In this document: positions 16,039 to 23,186 of the stretch, piece after piece
Layout of the letters: the number at the start of each line of letters is the position of its first letter
Position numbering within the stretch: position 1 is the stretch's first letter
Assembly: GCA_025201805.1 (NCBI GenBank)
Contig: MU619343.1
Coordinates: 49,889 to 113,888 of the forward strand
Reading direction: 5' to 3'
Length of the DNA stretch: 64,000 nt
Origin: Parasitella parasitica NRRL 2501
Taxonomy: Eukaryota > Fungi > Mucoromycota
The notes under the pieces: model-generated
What the model saw: only the letters and a program-made list of their open reading frames with translations
Told to the model about the DNA's origin: nothing
Database searches by the model: none
Position numbers and translations under genes: made by a program

Positions 16039-17484
16039 GTATGACACTCAAGTTGGTGGTAATCAATCACCTAGCATCTAAAAGTTTAATCCAGTTTATT
16101 GTTATTACATAAGCTGATTATTCACCCCTAATAGTTTTAATTTTTTCTTCGTCAACTATTGCTGATTTCAGTATTTTTGTTCATAATCTCATTCTTAATA
16201 AATTTTCATACACTAGATTGTTGCAAGGTGTCTTGTTTTATGTCTAAAAACAGTACTACTGCTTCCATATTGAAAGATATCTGACCAAACATGAGTCTGA
16301 CGCCAAGCTGGGTGATAGAGAGGGGCAGTTGCTGTACGCTTGCTATTTGATTCAAGCTATTATCTACTATTTCCAATGTAAACCATTTATTTTACATATT
16401 GGATAAAATCACATTAATTAAATTGTCTTCCGTATTCAATACATTATGCTTTATACAAGTTTAAGAGGGTTATTGCCCATCTTGATTATTTTTCCTCTGC
16501 ATCTGCCTTGATAAAATGTTGGCTCAAAAATGGGATTTTTATGACACGGACATGCTGATCAAGAACCATCGTTTGATTCGCTTCTGAGTCTAACCTAAAG
16601 CCAAATCCATTTCAAATTTCCCCCCTCTGAATTACATTTAGGCATATTAATTTTGTAAAAAAAAAATCGCTGAATGCAATAATACGGTACCATCATACGA
16701 AGCGAAATGTCATTTCTTCCGATACGCAAAAGAATGAGGTCGCCAAGATCTGATTATAGTTAGTTCTAGTTGATTTCAAACAATATGCAGAAATTTTTGG
16801 CGGTAAATAGAGAATGAACTTCTATCATTGCAGCCACTTTTTCATGCTGCTATCGCTTTTACAATCACTTTTCTATGACTGATCTACCCCTGAGCATAAT
16901 TCTACGTATTCTTCCTTTTGGAAGTCTATATTATTGCCAAGAATGTTTTTGTTCTTCTAAAAAAAGATGTTATAGATGTTTGAAGCCAAGCCAACCAGCC
17001 ACGATCATTCTACACACATACGAAAATAGAAATACGGAAGGCTAAGCTATTTAGCATCATGATCTCTGTGCCTTTTCACTTTTTACCATGACTTCATTTT
17101 ACTGTGCACTTAATCCTTACTAATATATCCTTGTCTACATGACGTATGAATACGTGGATGTAGAGCATATTGCTGAATACATATGCTTCATGTGCATTGT
17201 TGCACAATGGTTGTATTTCTTTGTGCTCAATAGCCTGCCAAAGGCAGCAATGAAGTCAGCTTATTGGATCAAGTAATGCCTAGATTTGGCTTGTATCACG
17301 CATCCAAGATAGTTTAGTTTCACTTTTACTGAAGCAAATGTTTTTTTTAATCTTAAAAACACCACCGTTTCGTCACTATTGTAACGGTTACAACCATTAC
17401 TGTCAAATAGTATAAAAAGATTGGAGGTTTTTGATAATAGGCTTTTTTATATTTTCTTCATACTTTATTTTTTCACTTTTCAAG

Positions 17485-18114
17485 ATGGCACTCTTTGGAT
17501 ATCTAGCCACCTTTTTTACCTTTGCCGCGCTTGTTCTTCAAATCTTTTCCATGATAGGCACAACTTATAATCAGCCATTCTTAAGGGATTTGTACTTTGT
17601 CAAAGTATCGACTGGCAGTGAGTTTGTCATTGCTGGCTTGTGGAGTTACTGTACTGGTTCTGTCAGTGGTGGGGTAAGCGCATGCACCAAACCTGTTCCA
17701 GCTTTTAACTGGAGTCTTGCTGACGGCGTTGCTGGGAGATATTTGGATGGAATCAGTAATCTGGATCGTGTATTCTTGGCCAACTTCATTCTGTACTGGA
17801 TTGCGTTAGGTTTCACCTTCTTTGCATTGATCATCACAGTCATGAGCCATTTCAGACGTGGCCCCGACTTTTTAGCTTCTCTCATGACCTTCATTGCTTT
17901 TGTCGTTCAAATGGTAGTATTTATCATTATTCTTGTCATCTCTATTCGTGGTCTCAATGCAGCAAAAGGTGAAAGCGCATCTGTGTCTGGTAATCTGGGG
18001 CCTTCCATGTGGATGACTTTGGGTGCCTTTGTTGCTCTGTTATTTTCTTCCATCGGCTATTGCTTTGCCTGTATCTGTGGCCCGGGGAAAATCAGATCTA
18101 ATGAAAAGGTCTAA
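17485..18114 (+). CDS. SUR7/PalI family tetraspan membrane protein
   Basis: Four hydrophobic segments; claudin-like GLWSYC...C motif; GPSMWM before TM4. Confidence 0.9.
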   Translation: MALFGYLATFFTFAALVLQIFSMIGTTYNQPFLRDLYFVKVSTGSEFVIAGLWSYCTGSVSGGVSACTKPVPAFNWSLADGVAGRYLDGISNLDRVFLANFILYWIALGFTFFALIITVMSHFRRGPDFLASLMTFIAFVVQMVVFIIILVISIRGLNAAKGESASVSGNLGPSMWMTLGAFVALLFSSIGYCFACICGPGKIRSNEKV

Positions 18115-18930
18115 ATGTTATTATATTCTGAGCCTCGTCTTCTTTATATCCTCATGAATATGGTTATATACTATATTCAAGCCAATGGTATAATACAGAA
18201 TTTACCTGTATTGAAATTTGTATACATAACAACCCAAAACAACTTGATACTATTACTGCTAATATTATTTTTTCACCTCTCCTCGACATCCTTATACATA
18301 TATCTTTTAATGAAATAAAAATACTTTGAACATGCTTTGCTTCTCTTACGAATAAAACAAATAAACAATTTATGCATTGCAACATCGTCGTGTGTATAGG
18401 ACAAATGCAGCATGACACTTTACTAATGGGCCCTAAAATGGATTATTTTACAAGGCACACTCTAATTTCATGCGATTATATTTTTGTAGTATCTAGTACG
18501 AAAGACTACATGAGTCTGCTGTAGTACATTCAACATGTTTTAAACTGTGCAATTACAGTATATTATATCAGGAGATTGGTAAAACTTTACTAGTAGTGTC
18601 CATCAGAAGCGAATTTTTTTGAACAGAATACCCTAGTCGGTTTACTTGACTATAAATCAGCCGACGAGGTAAAATCGAGCGCGGTGGTAATTTGCATCGA
18701 CATTTTTGAGTTGTGACGAATTGGTGAATGAGGGCTACACGCACAAAGCCATACAAAGTTTAGTTACCAAGAGTACACTTATCATTGGATACGCTGTAAG
18801 TGAATGTGTTATGATAAAAAACCTGGCCTCACATCCAATTACCCCCCTTCCTGTTTCTATTTTTTTTTTTCTTTTAGTTCTGTCTCTCTTTTCGCTTTTT
18901 ATTTATTATAAAGCAACACGACAAACAGTA

Positions 18931-20025
18931 ATGGACGAATATACTTTAAAAGATGTTTCCAAGCACCAAAATTCTGATTCCTGCTGGGTTGTTTACAAAA
19001 GCAAGGTATATGATGTAACAGAATTTATTCAAGACCATCCAGGTGGAGACGACCTCATTTTAGACCATGCAGGACATGATGTTACTGCAGTCATGAAGGA
19101 TGTGCTTGAACATGAGCATTCTGACTCGGCCTATGAAATCTTGGAGGAATATTGTATTGGCATTATTGTGGAAAATACTGCTACCACTGCGAATGTTGCT
19201 GCTACCAAATTGTCACTTCACGAACAACGTATGAAGCTATTGGAGGAGGAGGAAGAAAGCAAAACATTTGGCAAGGAGGATTTCAGACCCTCCGAAACCG
19301 ATATCACCTCTGACGTTAAAAAGAATCAATTCTTGGATCTGAGCAAGGCACTAGTTCCTCAACTCATCCGTGCTCGGTATACAAAGGAATTCTATCTGGA
19401 GCAAGTTCACAAGCCTCGTTACATGAATGGGCCAGCCATCTTCTTTGGGCACCCGTTATTAGAACCTTTGACAAAGACGGCTTGGTATGTTATCCCCACT
19501 GTTTGGATTCCGTACGTAGGCTACCAATTATACCAATCATTTGCGTACGGCAACGACATAGCAACATGGATGTCTTTTGTTTTGGGAATAGCCATTTGGA
19601 GTTTATTAGAATACCTCCTTCACCGCTTCTTTTTTCATTTGGATGAGCTATTACCTGACCATCAAGCAGCATTTGTATTGCATTTTGTCATTCATGGATT
19701 CCATCATTATTTGCCTATGGATAAATTAAGATTAGTCATGCCTCCTACGCTTGCCATTATCATTGCCTATCCCTTGGTGTCTTTGGGCCATTTCTTGTTT
19801 CCTCCAATGGTCTCCCATGGTGTTGTTGCTGGCGGTTTCTTTGGCTATGTCCTGTACGACTGCACGCATTATTATCTTCATCATGCTCGCGTATTCAAAT
19901 ATCATTTCAGAGAAATGAAGAAATATCACATGGCGCATCATTACAAGAATTATGAAGGTGGCTACGGTATTACTTCCAAGATTTGGGATTATTGCTTTGG
20001 TACCGTACTGGAGTATACCAACTAA
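18931..20025 (+). CDS. SCS7: Sphingolipid fatty acid 2-hydroxylase (cytochrome b5 fusion), intronless
   Basis: b5 HPGG motif; His boxes LHRFFFH, HGFHH, HYYLHH, HMAHH; PMDKLRLVMPP. Confidence 0.97.
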   Translation: MDEYTLKDVSKHQNSDSCWVVYKSKVYDVTEFIQDHPGGDDLILDHAGHDVTAVMKDVLEHEHSDSAYEILEEYCIGIIVENTATTANVAATKLSLHEQRMKLLEEEEESKTFGKEDFRPSETDITSDVKKNQFLDLSKALVPQLIRARYTKEFYLEQVHKPRYMNGPAIFFGHPLLEPLTKTAWYVIPTVWIPYVGYQLYQSFAYGNDIATWMSFVLGIAIWSLLEYLLHRFFFHLDELLPDHQAAFVLHFVIHGFHHYLPMDKLRLVMPPTLAIIIAYPLVSLGHFLFPPMVSHGVVAGGFFGYVLYDCTHYYLHHARVFKYHFREMKKYHMAHHYKNYEGGYGITSKIWDYCFGTVLEYTN

Positions 20026-20905
20026 TCTTTTTTAAAATTCATTGCTATTAATCATTATTACTTTATTACACATCTGTTTTGCTTATTTTTATGTATTATG
20101 TAAAAAAATCTTTCGACTTTTTGGAAAGCATGCTTTATTCCGTAATCTCATTAATAAAATCCATGCACACGCACATTAAATGTATTTAAATGTAGAAGAT
20201 TATCTCTAACGAGTAAAGAAAGTGTTCTTGTGAAAAGATTTTTAGTGGCATATCAGAAAATTTTTCTTCTGTAATTTGTAGTTTAACTTCCAATAGTGAA
20301 GATTTCATTTAAGGATGTGTTTATTCTCAATGGTAGATTTTATCAGAGATTGAGCGCATTACTTAGTTTTTGATAAACCAATGTTAAGGCTCTTGTGCAA
20401 GAATAATCCGATAGTAAGGATAGTATTGATCATAAAGAGAAAAATGTTATAGTAATATGGATTCCATTTGATTTAGACTATTCATTAGTTTTCCCTTCTA
20501 TAATTGCGACTTGTTTTTTTTCATAATTAACTCCTTGAATTTAGGATCTTGTTGTTATATGGTTTCAGATGCTGGATGAGCTTGAGAGTATGTTGATATC
20601 CGATGTGTAACGCTTTCATGATTGTGGATGCCAACATCTCGGCTTTGCTATAGATTTTCCGCTCGATCTTATTCTCAAGGGACTTTTGGTCTTGGATTTC
20701 ATTGAATAATTGATAAATTATGGTGCTTCCTTAACGTACATCGTTTATCCTAACATATATGACACTGGACTACACGATCGTAAATTATCATATCTTGAAA
20801 AGCAAAAAAACCTTCACATGACAAGATGAGAACCTGGAGTCAAGTATTGACTTGAAGAAAAAGGCTTTTAAAGAACAAGGTTTCCGTTTTATTAAACAGA
20901 ATATT

Positions 20906-21216
20906 CCTCAGTTAGAAAAACGCCTTCCGCCGATAATGACTCTAGGATTGCAATGACGAGCCATAAGTCAGGAAACAATGATGGCAAGAGAAATATCGAA
21001 ACAATTATCTGGGAAAATGAAATTAATCAGGTAATGATCCGTTTATTACATTCAAAATAGAGAGTTGATATATTTTCTACGAACCGAGGAAAGCGATGCG
21101 AGGATAAAGATTTTAGTGATGAGATCCGGGAAATAGGGTAGATTATACTCATCCCAAATGTCATGTCATATTACTTTATGATCTGATATTTTATTTTGAC
21201 ATCCGGTTTTAGAATT
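20906..21216. repeat. Insertion of about 310 bp within the Fanzor remnant; dispersed repeat copy A
   Basis: Flanked by ATT...ATT; removing it restores the frame IKQNI-DTSTS; homologous to about 62497-62680. Confidence 0.65.
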
Positions 21217-22245
21217 GATACATCAACCAGTACTACGGGCCGTACTACGAAGCAAAAAGAAATACTTCACGAAAATCAACCAAGCCTGCTATAATCAGTA
21301 ATGCAGAAACGCTTCTTTCAGAAACAAATTTATCTACTGTAGACGTTGACAAATTTTCGGGTTATATAAAGGCAAGAGCTTCTGTGGAGGATTTGTTGAG
21401 CCAATGCTATGGAAATGAAACTCAAAAACATGAAGAGAAATACTTGCCTGGCTCCTGTTTTAATTTAATGTGGAGAAGAATAGAAATCTGTGGTTAGAGA
21501 AATAATTCATATTAAAAATTCGAGGTTACTTTCCTCAAAATAATCTAAGTCTCAACTGTATGCGGCCTATGTACTACTAAGGCTACAACAAAAACATATT
21601 ACGAAACTATTGCACAAGTAACTCAACTTGTGGAAGAGTTATTCACAAGTGAAGAAGTTACGTTAAAACAACGATTAAGTAAACCATTCCGAAAAATGAA
21701 ATTCTCAAGCAAAGTTACTACTACCAAACTGATGAAATATTAACACGAAGCTTGAAGAAGAAATTTGGTCTTGATTGCGTCCTGGTGTTAAGGAACTGGT
21801 CTGTCTCCAAACAATAAATACCATGAAGCGACAAGAAATAAGGGCCTTATACGAATGTACAAGAGGAATGGGGTTTTCGTTTTTCTGATTGATAAGTTTA
21901 AAACCTCGTCATAATGCCCAATCTGTGAAGATGATCTCGAAACTTTCAAAACAGTTTAGTTAATCCCCGCTTATATAAAAGGGCTGGTATACCAGTAGTC
22001 AAATGCCACGGGCTACTAAGGTATATGATAACGGTAATTGTAACAACGAATTGGGATGATTACAACCACTCAATCATTAGGTACAAGAGCAGCAAAATGC
22101 CTTTCTGAAGAAACGGTAAAAAAAGTTATGGAACCGAGATCCTGCAGCTGCTTGGACTTTCGAAAGATATTGATAAGTTTAAGGGTCAAGTGCCCAAAGC
22201 TGTTTTTCAGAAAACAAGCCCAAAAATCAACATAAAAAAGAGAAA

Positions 22246-22286
22246 TTTTCCACTAGAGTATTGATCTGGCTATTTAATGCAGGTAA
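22246..22286 (+). ncRNA. Candidate Fanzor omegaRNA scaffold at the element's right end
   Basis: TTTTCCACTAGAGTATTGATCTGGCTATTTAATGCAGGTAA lies directly downstream of the RuvC-III-coding region and contains a CTAGA/TCTGG hairpin. Confidence 0.6.
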
Positions 22287-23186
22287 TATACCGTATTAAT
22301 ATCCTGTATTAGTGAAAATATTATAAGACAAGAAATTAGAATTGCAACAAGTGCACATCATTATGCAGTCCAAACAAGGACTTCGTTGGGCTTAGACGTC
22401 TACTGCTGGCATGGCAAAATGATGCACTTTTGACTGATCTACTAAAATACATGAATAACTTCAGTAATCAAGATAATTTTACACAGTCTATACCCCCCCT
22501 TTTTTATATATTACTATAAACATGCGAAAAAGACCCCTTTTTTTGTTGCATATATAGTTCTTTATTTTGGTCTTGCCGACATCAATATCAACCCATGAAT
22601 ATGGCGAGCATGCAACAAACATGTATAGAACGCACACCCAGGATTGTGTATATGTCTCAACTAAATGTTCGGATGGATCAAGTGCAGTGTAGAGCAATAA
22701 AAAGCTCTCCTCGCTTTCTCCTTTTAACCTACTTTTTTCTTTTGCTTATATTGATATTCTTTCATACTACAAAAAGGATAAAAGAAGCCCCTAAGTAGAA
22801 CGAAAGACATGAAAAAACTACACTGGCTCTTTGCTGCTTCCAAAAAAAAAAGAAAAAAAAAAAAGAGGATCCTCTCCTTGTAAAAAAAGACCCCTTCTAT
22901 TCTCAATTTCATAATGATCACCTCTCCTTGTGTTGTCGTTGTTGTTTTCTTGTTGCTATTGGTGTTGTCTTGTTAAGAGAAAAAGTTGCAACTACAATAC
23001 ATCAACTTCTTTTCCCTTTTTCACTTCTTTTTTTTTTTTTATCCCCCTCGTTGTCTATGTTCAACTTGTCATAATAATTTTATTACTTCTGCCATTACTA
23101 CTATTACCACTACTAGAACATCTGTAAATACACATATATTTTATCAATCCATCTAACTGACCAAAAGACAGATAAGAAAGAGGAAA

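Follow-up and report, generated by a model that had tools for sequence, protein, structure and literature searches.

In the 64,000-nucleotide stretch of Parasitella parasitica NRRL 2501 DNA analyzed here (contig MU619343.1; hereafter the window, with positions counted from its first letter), a gene for a SUR7/PalI protein (17431-18114) is followed by a + strand gene (18706-20025) for a cytochrome b5 plus fatty acid hydroxylase protein of the Scs7/FA2H-like type, both of these neighboring genes being fungal in type. Directly downstream of the hydroxylase gene lies an intergenic space which had originally been predicted to be an ORF-free gap hiding a fossil Fanzor1 RNA-guided nuclease. Indeed, no open reading frame longer than 59 aa is found between 20026 and 22300, and the + strand at 20657-22290 very probably carries, as judged from its sequence, the decayed 3′ half of a PpFz1-type Fanzor1 gene, that is, of a TnpB-like RNA-guided RuvC nuclease from a DNA transposon. 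The relic does occupy the proposed stretch of 20720-22210, but these limits are too narrow, as detectable similarity spans 20657/20709-22290 (+) and extends further 3′.

All peptides that had suggested the relic are present on the + strand close to where they had been read, spread across three frames. By three-frame translation, YMTLDYTIVNYHILK is read in the 20735-20818 frame, KKKAFKEQG in the 20822-20953 frame and KPAIISNAETLLS...YIKARASVEDLLSQCYGNE in the 21219-21494 frame (all on the + strand), followed on the same strand by PFRKMKFSSK, KKFGLDCVLVLRNWS and FLIDKFKTSS*CPIC (21792-21926) as well as by CHGLLR and LWNRDPAAA (22120-22170). When compared with the PDB by phmmer, three of the window pieces match, in colinear order, PpFz1, the Fanzor1 of Parasitella parasitica (PDB 9CF0-9CF3; Xu et al. 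2024, PMC11423790), and essentially nothing else. The 20735-20818 piece corresponds to positions 778-803 of the PpFz1 chain (9CF0; E 8e-4), the 21219-21494 frame (aligned at about 21267-21467) to 934-1000 (E 1.3e-9) and the 21792-21911 frame (aligned at about 21801-21911) to 1134-1170 (E 1.6e-8), with one piece also touching SpuFz1 weakly (E 0.14). Moreover, frameshift-aware protein-to-DNA DP alignment against the frame of a paralogue from contig C201 of the same genome covers 20709-22021 at a score of 553, compared with 38-57 for 12 DNA shuffles, and for the second exon an alignment over 22123-22232 has 25 of 36 residues identical and scores 97 (at most 36 in 20 shuffles). In the genome searched (32.8 Mb, 450 contigs), tblastn reveals paralogues colinear with the window relic, and these are assigned to Fanzor1 because of their matches to PpFz1 (E 2.7e-121 and 4.6e-148) and to SpuFz1 from Spizellomyces (8GKH; 4e-45). 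Hence, the predicted fossil Fanzor1 is corroborated by three colinear PpFz1 matches, by a DP score above that of the shuffles and by colinear in-genome paralogues, with significant Fanzor matches running in order across the fragments. The family assignment rests on these tests.

Similarity begins at about 20657-20709 with the CFPLR..YMTLD block, which is equivalent to chain position 775 or so of PpFz1. From here, the 5′ part of the relic (20657-21015, +) comprises the end of the WED domain and the start of RuvC, recognizable from CFPLR.., YMTLD.., KKKAFKEQG and DGKRNIETI, and it is disrupted by a TGA stop at 20819 and by frameshifts near 20733 and 20894. Regarding the N-terminal REC domain and most of WED, no similarity to the N-terminal 250 residues of the paralogues from contigs C57 or C16 was detected upstream of 20657, and 20170-20656 shows neither Fanzor nor repeat similarity. 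There is no space for the N-terminal half, because the hydroxylase gene has its stop at 20025.

The DPG block of RuvC-I had been predicted to be deleted near 21270. Its loss is evident, but not as a simple deletion, since the block is replaced by a 212-bp, 5′-truncated copy of an LTR-like repeat at 21016-21227 (+). The corresponding repeat family, with TG..CA ends and a length of about 258 bp, numbers at least 48 genomic copies (including loci L002-L030) at 78-95% identity. Five aligned copies (L003, L012, L007, L002, and L023) have the TG..CA ends, the length of about 258 bp and matching 5-bp flanking duplications; such ends plus 5-bp duplications are the signature of a solo LTR, and by these sequence features the repeat is LTR-like. 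Since about 25 nt are missing from the 5′ end of the window copy, its own target duplication is unreadable. Even after removal of the fragment, about 40 reference residues (at about positions 111-152 of the C201 frame) remain without counterpart, among them the GKCVLMDPGRRD block holding the RuvC-I Asp (the DPGRRD block in this lineage). A first DP alignment threading the RuvC-I block through the repeat fragment was discarded as spurious, the DNA in question belonging to the family of at least 48 copies. The repeat is also present in RNA contigs of run X7, the run described below.

Downstream of the repeat fragment, the rest of exon 1 (21228-22020, +) encompasses RuvC with an FRI-type insertion, RuvC-II and the first half of the TNB zinc finger up to ...VKCHGLLR. 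It is 47% identical to the C201 paralogue and is disrupted by seven frameshifts and, at 21503 and 21912, by TAA stops. According to the alignment, 21420-21680 (+) is the counterpart of the FRI insertion described for PpFz1 (PMC11423790), which is found in the C101/C201 family and missing from the C16 copy. At the position of the catalytic RuvC-II Glu (21894-21896, +), the codon AAG specifies Lys, as had been predicted: the window reads IDKFKTSS, whereas the paralogues (GEYKTSS and NEHKTSS) and PpFz1 (IDEFRTSS) carry Glu; TSS is kept in the window. The in-frame TAA at 21912 immediately precedes CPIC (21915-21926, +), the first Cys pair of the TNB zinc finger, and both CPIC and the Cys of CHGLLR are kept. 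After CHGLLR follows the relic of a conserved phase-2 intron (22021-22080, +; 60 nt, with GT..AG kept), the position and phase of which are as in the C16 and C201 paralogues. In the exon 2 relic (22081-22277, +), WNRD and FRKILISLR are recognizable, with WNRD, the RuvC-III Asp motif, at 22129-22140 aligning with WNRD of the paralogues. At the start of this exon, the Cys pair of the paralogue motif RCRSSxC reads Y and M by eye, in a segment unaligned in the DP. Further lesions of exon 2 are a TGA (22106-22108), a frameshift at 22150 and, by eye, frameshifts near 22110-22120 and 22255-22262, and the ancestral stop codon is positioned at 22275-22277. In total, about 12 frameshifts and at least four in-frame stops (20819, 21503, 21912, and 22106) have accumulated, leaving no full-length open reading frame, and the relic is a pseudogene. 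The predicted inactivity of this copy is thus supported by the missing RuvC-I block and N-terminal half, by Lys in place of the RuvC-II Glu and by the frameshifts and stops; the relic would be incapable of making a nuclease and without function of its own.

An OMEGA-type element family elsewhere in the genome had likewise been anticipated, and it is found with 79 matches to PF07282 (the TnpB/Fanzor zinc-ribbon family, which matches an intact paralogue weakly) and 59 matches to the Fz1 lineage of the relic on about 35 contigs, most of the latter with stops. The relic is an ordinary one among dozens in this genome. Intact copies, for which the original prediction had hoped, are absent from the readable ones, many loci being N-masked; N runs in L038, L042, L045, L047, L048, L056, L060, L066, and L075 inflate the open-frame lengths at these loci. 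Paralogues with long open frames are located on contigs C16, C201, and C101, of which the C201 and C101 copies are frameshifted. The best preserved readable Fanzor1 copy is that of C16 (L063 913-915). Besides exon 2, it has an open frame of 529 aa and retains D, E and D, but it is without the FRI insertion, is interrupted by one in-frame TAA at a Leu position of PpFz1 and shows no clear beginning on the 5′ side.

The nearest family of the window relic has members on contigs C201, C101, C57, C10, C62, C50, C76, and C161 (loci L053 1117-3155, L054, L055, L056/L057, L058, L066, L068, and L072). These elements of 2.9-3.2 kb contain a Fanzor gene only and no transposase. At the left end, TA is followed by CAGTGCAACC..GTAAATTTTGTCC, and at the right end ..GACAAAATTAATCAGTnCAACTG is followed by TA, the two ends forming an imperfect inverted repeat of about 28 bp of the CAGT type with TA on both sides. 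Such termini are, at the sequence level, the marks of Tc1/mariner-type Fanzor1 carriers as described by Bao and Jurka (PMC3627910). With respect to the transposase class and element ends that had been left for identification, the nearest family can thus be described as Tc1/mariner-like, but the relic's own ends were not found. At least four copies of the nearest family share one internal deletion (L053 1795 to 2648), indicating that a deletion derivative multiplied after the deletion.

For PpFz1, the omegaRNA is known to start within the end of the coding sequence (Table S3, PMC11423790), and a corresponding omegaRNA-scaffold stretch is conserved at the ends of the C201-family genes. In the window, 22246-22290 (+; TTTCCAC...TATTTAATGCAGGTA) appears homologous to the 3′ end of the C201-family coding sequence and likewise to the PpFz1 omegaRNA scaffold, specifically its 5′ part. 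An nhmmer search with the 3′ end of the nearest family gave a match of 37 nt at 22249-22285 (E 2e-4). The PpFz1 omegaRNA was compared with the window by eye and by one 12-mer pattern; this 12-mer, TTAATGCAGGTA, which both have in common, is present at a single place in the 64-kb window, against none expected. The omegaRNA likeness at 22246-22290 is one of sequence homology only: predicted folding of the segment is not above that of shuffles (z 0.19), for the window and two paralogues alike, and no RNA contig lies over it. Beyond 22290, nothing recognizable follows, and homology does not define the right end of the relic. In the C201 family, an intron-like stretch (GCAG/GTACGT ... GCTAAC ... 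TTCTTAG/) is seen between the stop codon and the right end (L055 3025-3110 and equivalents). Its start falls within the motif that the family has in common with the PpFz1 omegaRNA, the latter reading GCAG/GTAAGC at this site. Guide-RNA production and splicing may overlap at the 3′ end of the C201 family.

As to the origin of the relic, a contig of run X11 (record 6, 9117 nt) is colinear with the window from the hydroxylase gene to 23000, apart from a missing block of 2169 bp (20170-22338, +): in the contig, 20169 and 22339 are linked by 68 letters of unrelated sequence. X11 has the same species label, and about 10% of the hydroxylase-gene positions differ; the label seems to cover divergent lineages. 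Within 19000-23000, run X10 has loose ends that are free of C, so that it looks bisulfite-converted, and it was left out. The positions 20170 and 22338 give the outer limits of an insertion, or of a deletion in X11, and the observation fits insertion. Near these two positions (searched in 20000-20800 and 22200-22700), neither CAGT/ACTG inverted ends nor a TA duplication were detected. Nevertheless, since X11 is without 20170-22338 and the nearest family has TA-flanked CAGT-type ends, we infer that this copy was transposed. The relic would have arrived on a Tc1/mariner-like, Fanzor-only carrier and would then have undergone neutral decay.

Part of the relic is also represented in assembled contigs of run X7, one of which (3125 nt) extends, spliced, from the hydroxylase gene through to 21524. 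Removed in this contig are GT..AG introns at 20414-20476 and, inside the LTR-like fragment, at 21031-21093 and 21138-21212 (all +), and the contig is unspliced across 20477-21028 and 21212-21524. Our guess is that X7 is an RNA run, as its contig skips these three canonical GT..AG stretches. The 5′ two thirds of the relic are probably transcribed from the + strand, as far as can be deduced from assembled contigs, one contig not being proof of one transcript, and no RNA contig covers 21546-22617. Most likely, RNA of the relic would represent a long 3′ UTR of the upstream gene or read-through. Beyond the stop codon of the Scs7/FA2H-like gene, its RNA contig (18200-21524) goes on for about 1.3 kb and has three introns spliced out, which is unusual for a fungal 3′ UTR.

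Considering these contigs, the relic and the LTR-like fragment might have been co-opted as a spliced, three-intron 3′ UTR or non-coding RNA regulating the Scs7/FA2H-like gene, for example, via nonsense-mediated decay or transcript stability. We regard such a role as unlikely. It would agree with an X7 contig joining the hydroxylase gene to 21524 and with three GT..AG introns after the stop, two of them inside the LTR-like fragment, but contigs cannot show a single molecule, its ends or its level. Moreover, the sequence decays like neutral DNA, with frameshifts, stops and 47% identity to its kin, and the block is missing altogether from the divergent lineage that carries the same species label.

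The same contig bears on whether the locus could be a live, intron-rich Fanzor1 gene with the apparent frameshifts representing overlooked short introns. Introns do occur in Fanzor1 genes of the same family, and the fungus uses introns of 60-75 nt. However, over 20477-21028 and 21212-21524 the RNA contig follows the genome without a gap, running through the TGA at 20819, the TAA at 21503 and frameshifts; as it is unspliced there, these lesions cannot be explained as introns of a live gene. As, in addition, homologous residues sit directly on either side of the stops, neither the RuvC-I block nor the N-terminal half is present and the RuvC-II residue is Lys, a live gene has next to nothing to commend it.

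Pfam searches with nine separate window pieces returned no Fanzor-related family but two chance-level matches only, and when 20700-22250, 20030-20722, and 22000-23000 were compared with the genome at the DNA level, no further copy emerged except for the repeat fragment. Chance or low-complexity similarity in AT-rich intergenic DNA, with which both results would agree, is nonetheless extremely improbable as the source of the Fanzor likeness, given that three independent pieces match one protein in order, that shuffles reach only a tenth of the alignment score and that the paralogues share the intron position and the 3′ motif.

The decayed Fanzor1 gene thus favored here resembles PpFz1 in domain order, in the FRI-type insertion between GNET and PFRK, in TSS-CPxC, CHGLLR and WNRD, and in its 3′ end, which is similar to the PpFz1 omegaRNA scaffold. 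In contrast to PpFz1, it lacks both the RuvC-I Asp block and the N-terminal half, carries a Lys in place of the RuvC-II Glu, bears many frameshifts and stops, is interrupted by a repeat fragment and shows no omegaRNA expression in the RNA contigs. From Mucorales and Spizellomyces, Bao and Jurka (2013, PMC3627910) described Fanzor1 transposons (SPu-1, MCi, ROr, and PBl families) that are 2-3 kb long, carry Fanzor alone, have terminal inverted repeats as well as TA duplications and occur as several, mostly decayed families per genome. Like these, the nearest family of the present genome has ends of the type TA followed by CAGTGCAAC..., and the relic shows most of the signature ...[TS][TS]-x-x-zinc finger...RD, whereas its own ends were not found and the leading D of the signature is missing. 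With bacterial TnpB (IS200/IS605, IS607) and Cas12, the relic has in common a split RuvC fold into which a zinc ribbon (TNB) is inserted, and a guide RNA would likewise be encoded at the 3′ end of the gene. Distinct from the bacterial proteins are the eukaryotic context, spliceosomal introns, the FRI insertion, the dead state of the window copy and, compared with TnpB, Tc1/mariner-like ends (in the nearest family) instead of the IS605 hairpin ends.

By itself, the relic matters little, being one more decayed entry of a well-known family that was first described in this fungal group; knowledge of Fanzor1 families in Mucorales-type fungi dates back to 2013, with both the biochemistry and the structures already solved. 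Even heavily frameshifted OMEGA-type relics are, as this case illustrates, recoverable by sequence-only reading. If the co-option considered above were true, lineages with and without the 2.2-kb block would regulate expression of the sphingolipid hydroxylase differently. For the Fanzor1 family, the genome holds a PpFz1-like lineage with the FRI-type insertion on Tc1/mariner-like carriers, this insertion having so far been reported only from Parasitella and Rhizopus. Moreover, within one named species the locus is cleanly filled in one lineage and empty in another, a difference by which Fanzor activity could be dated.
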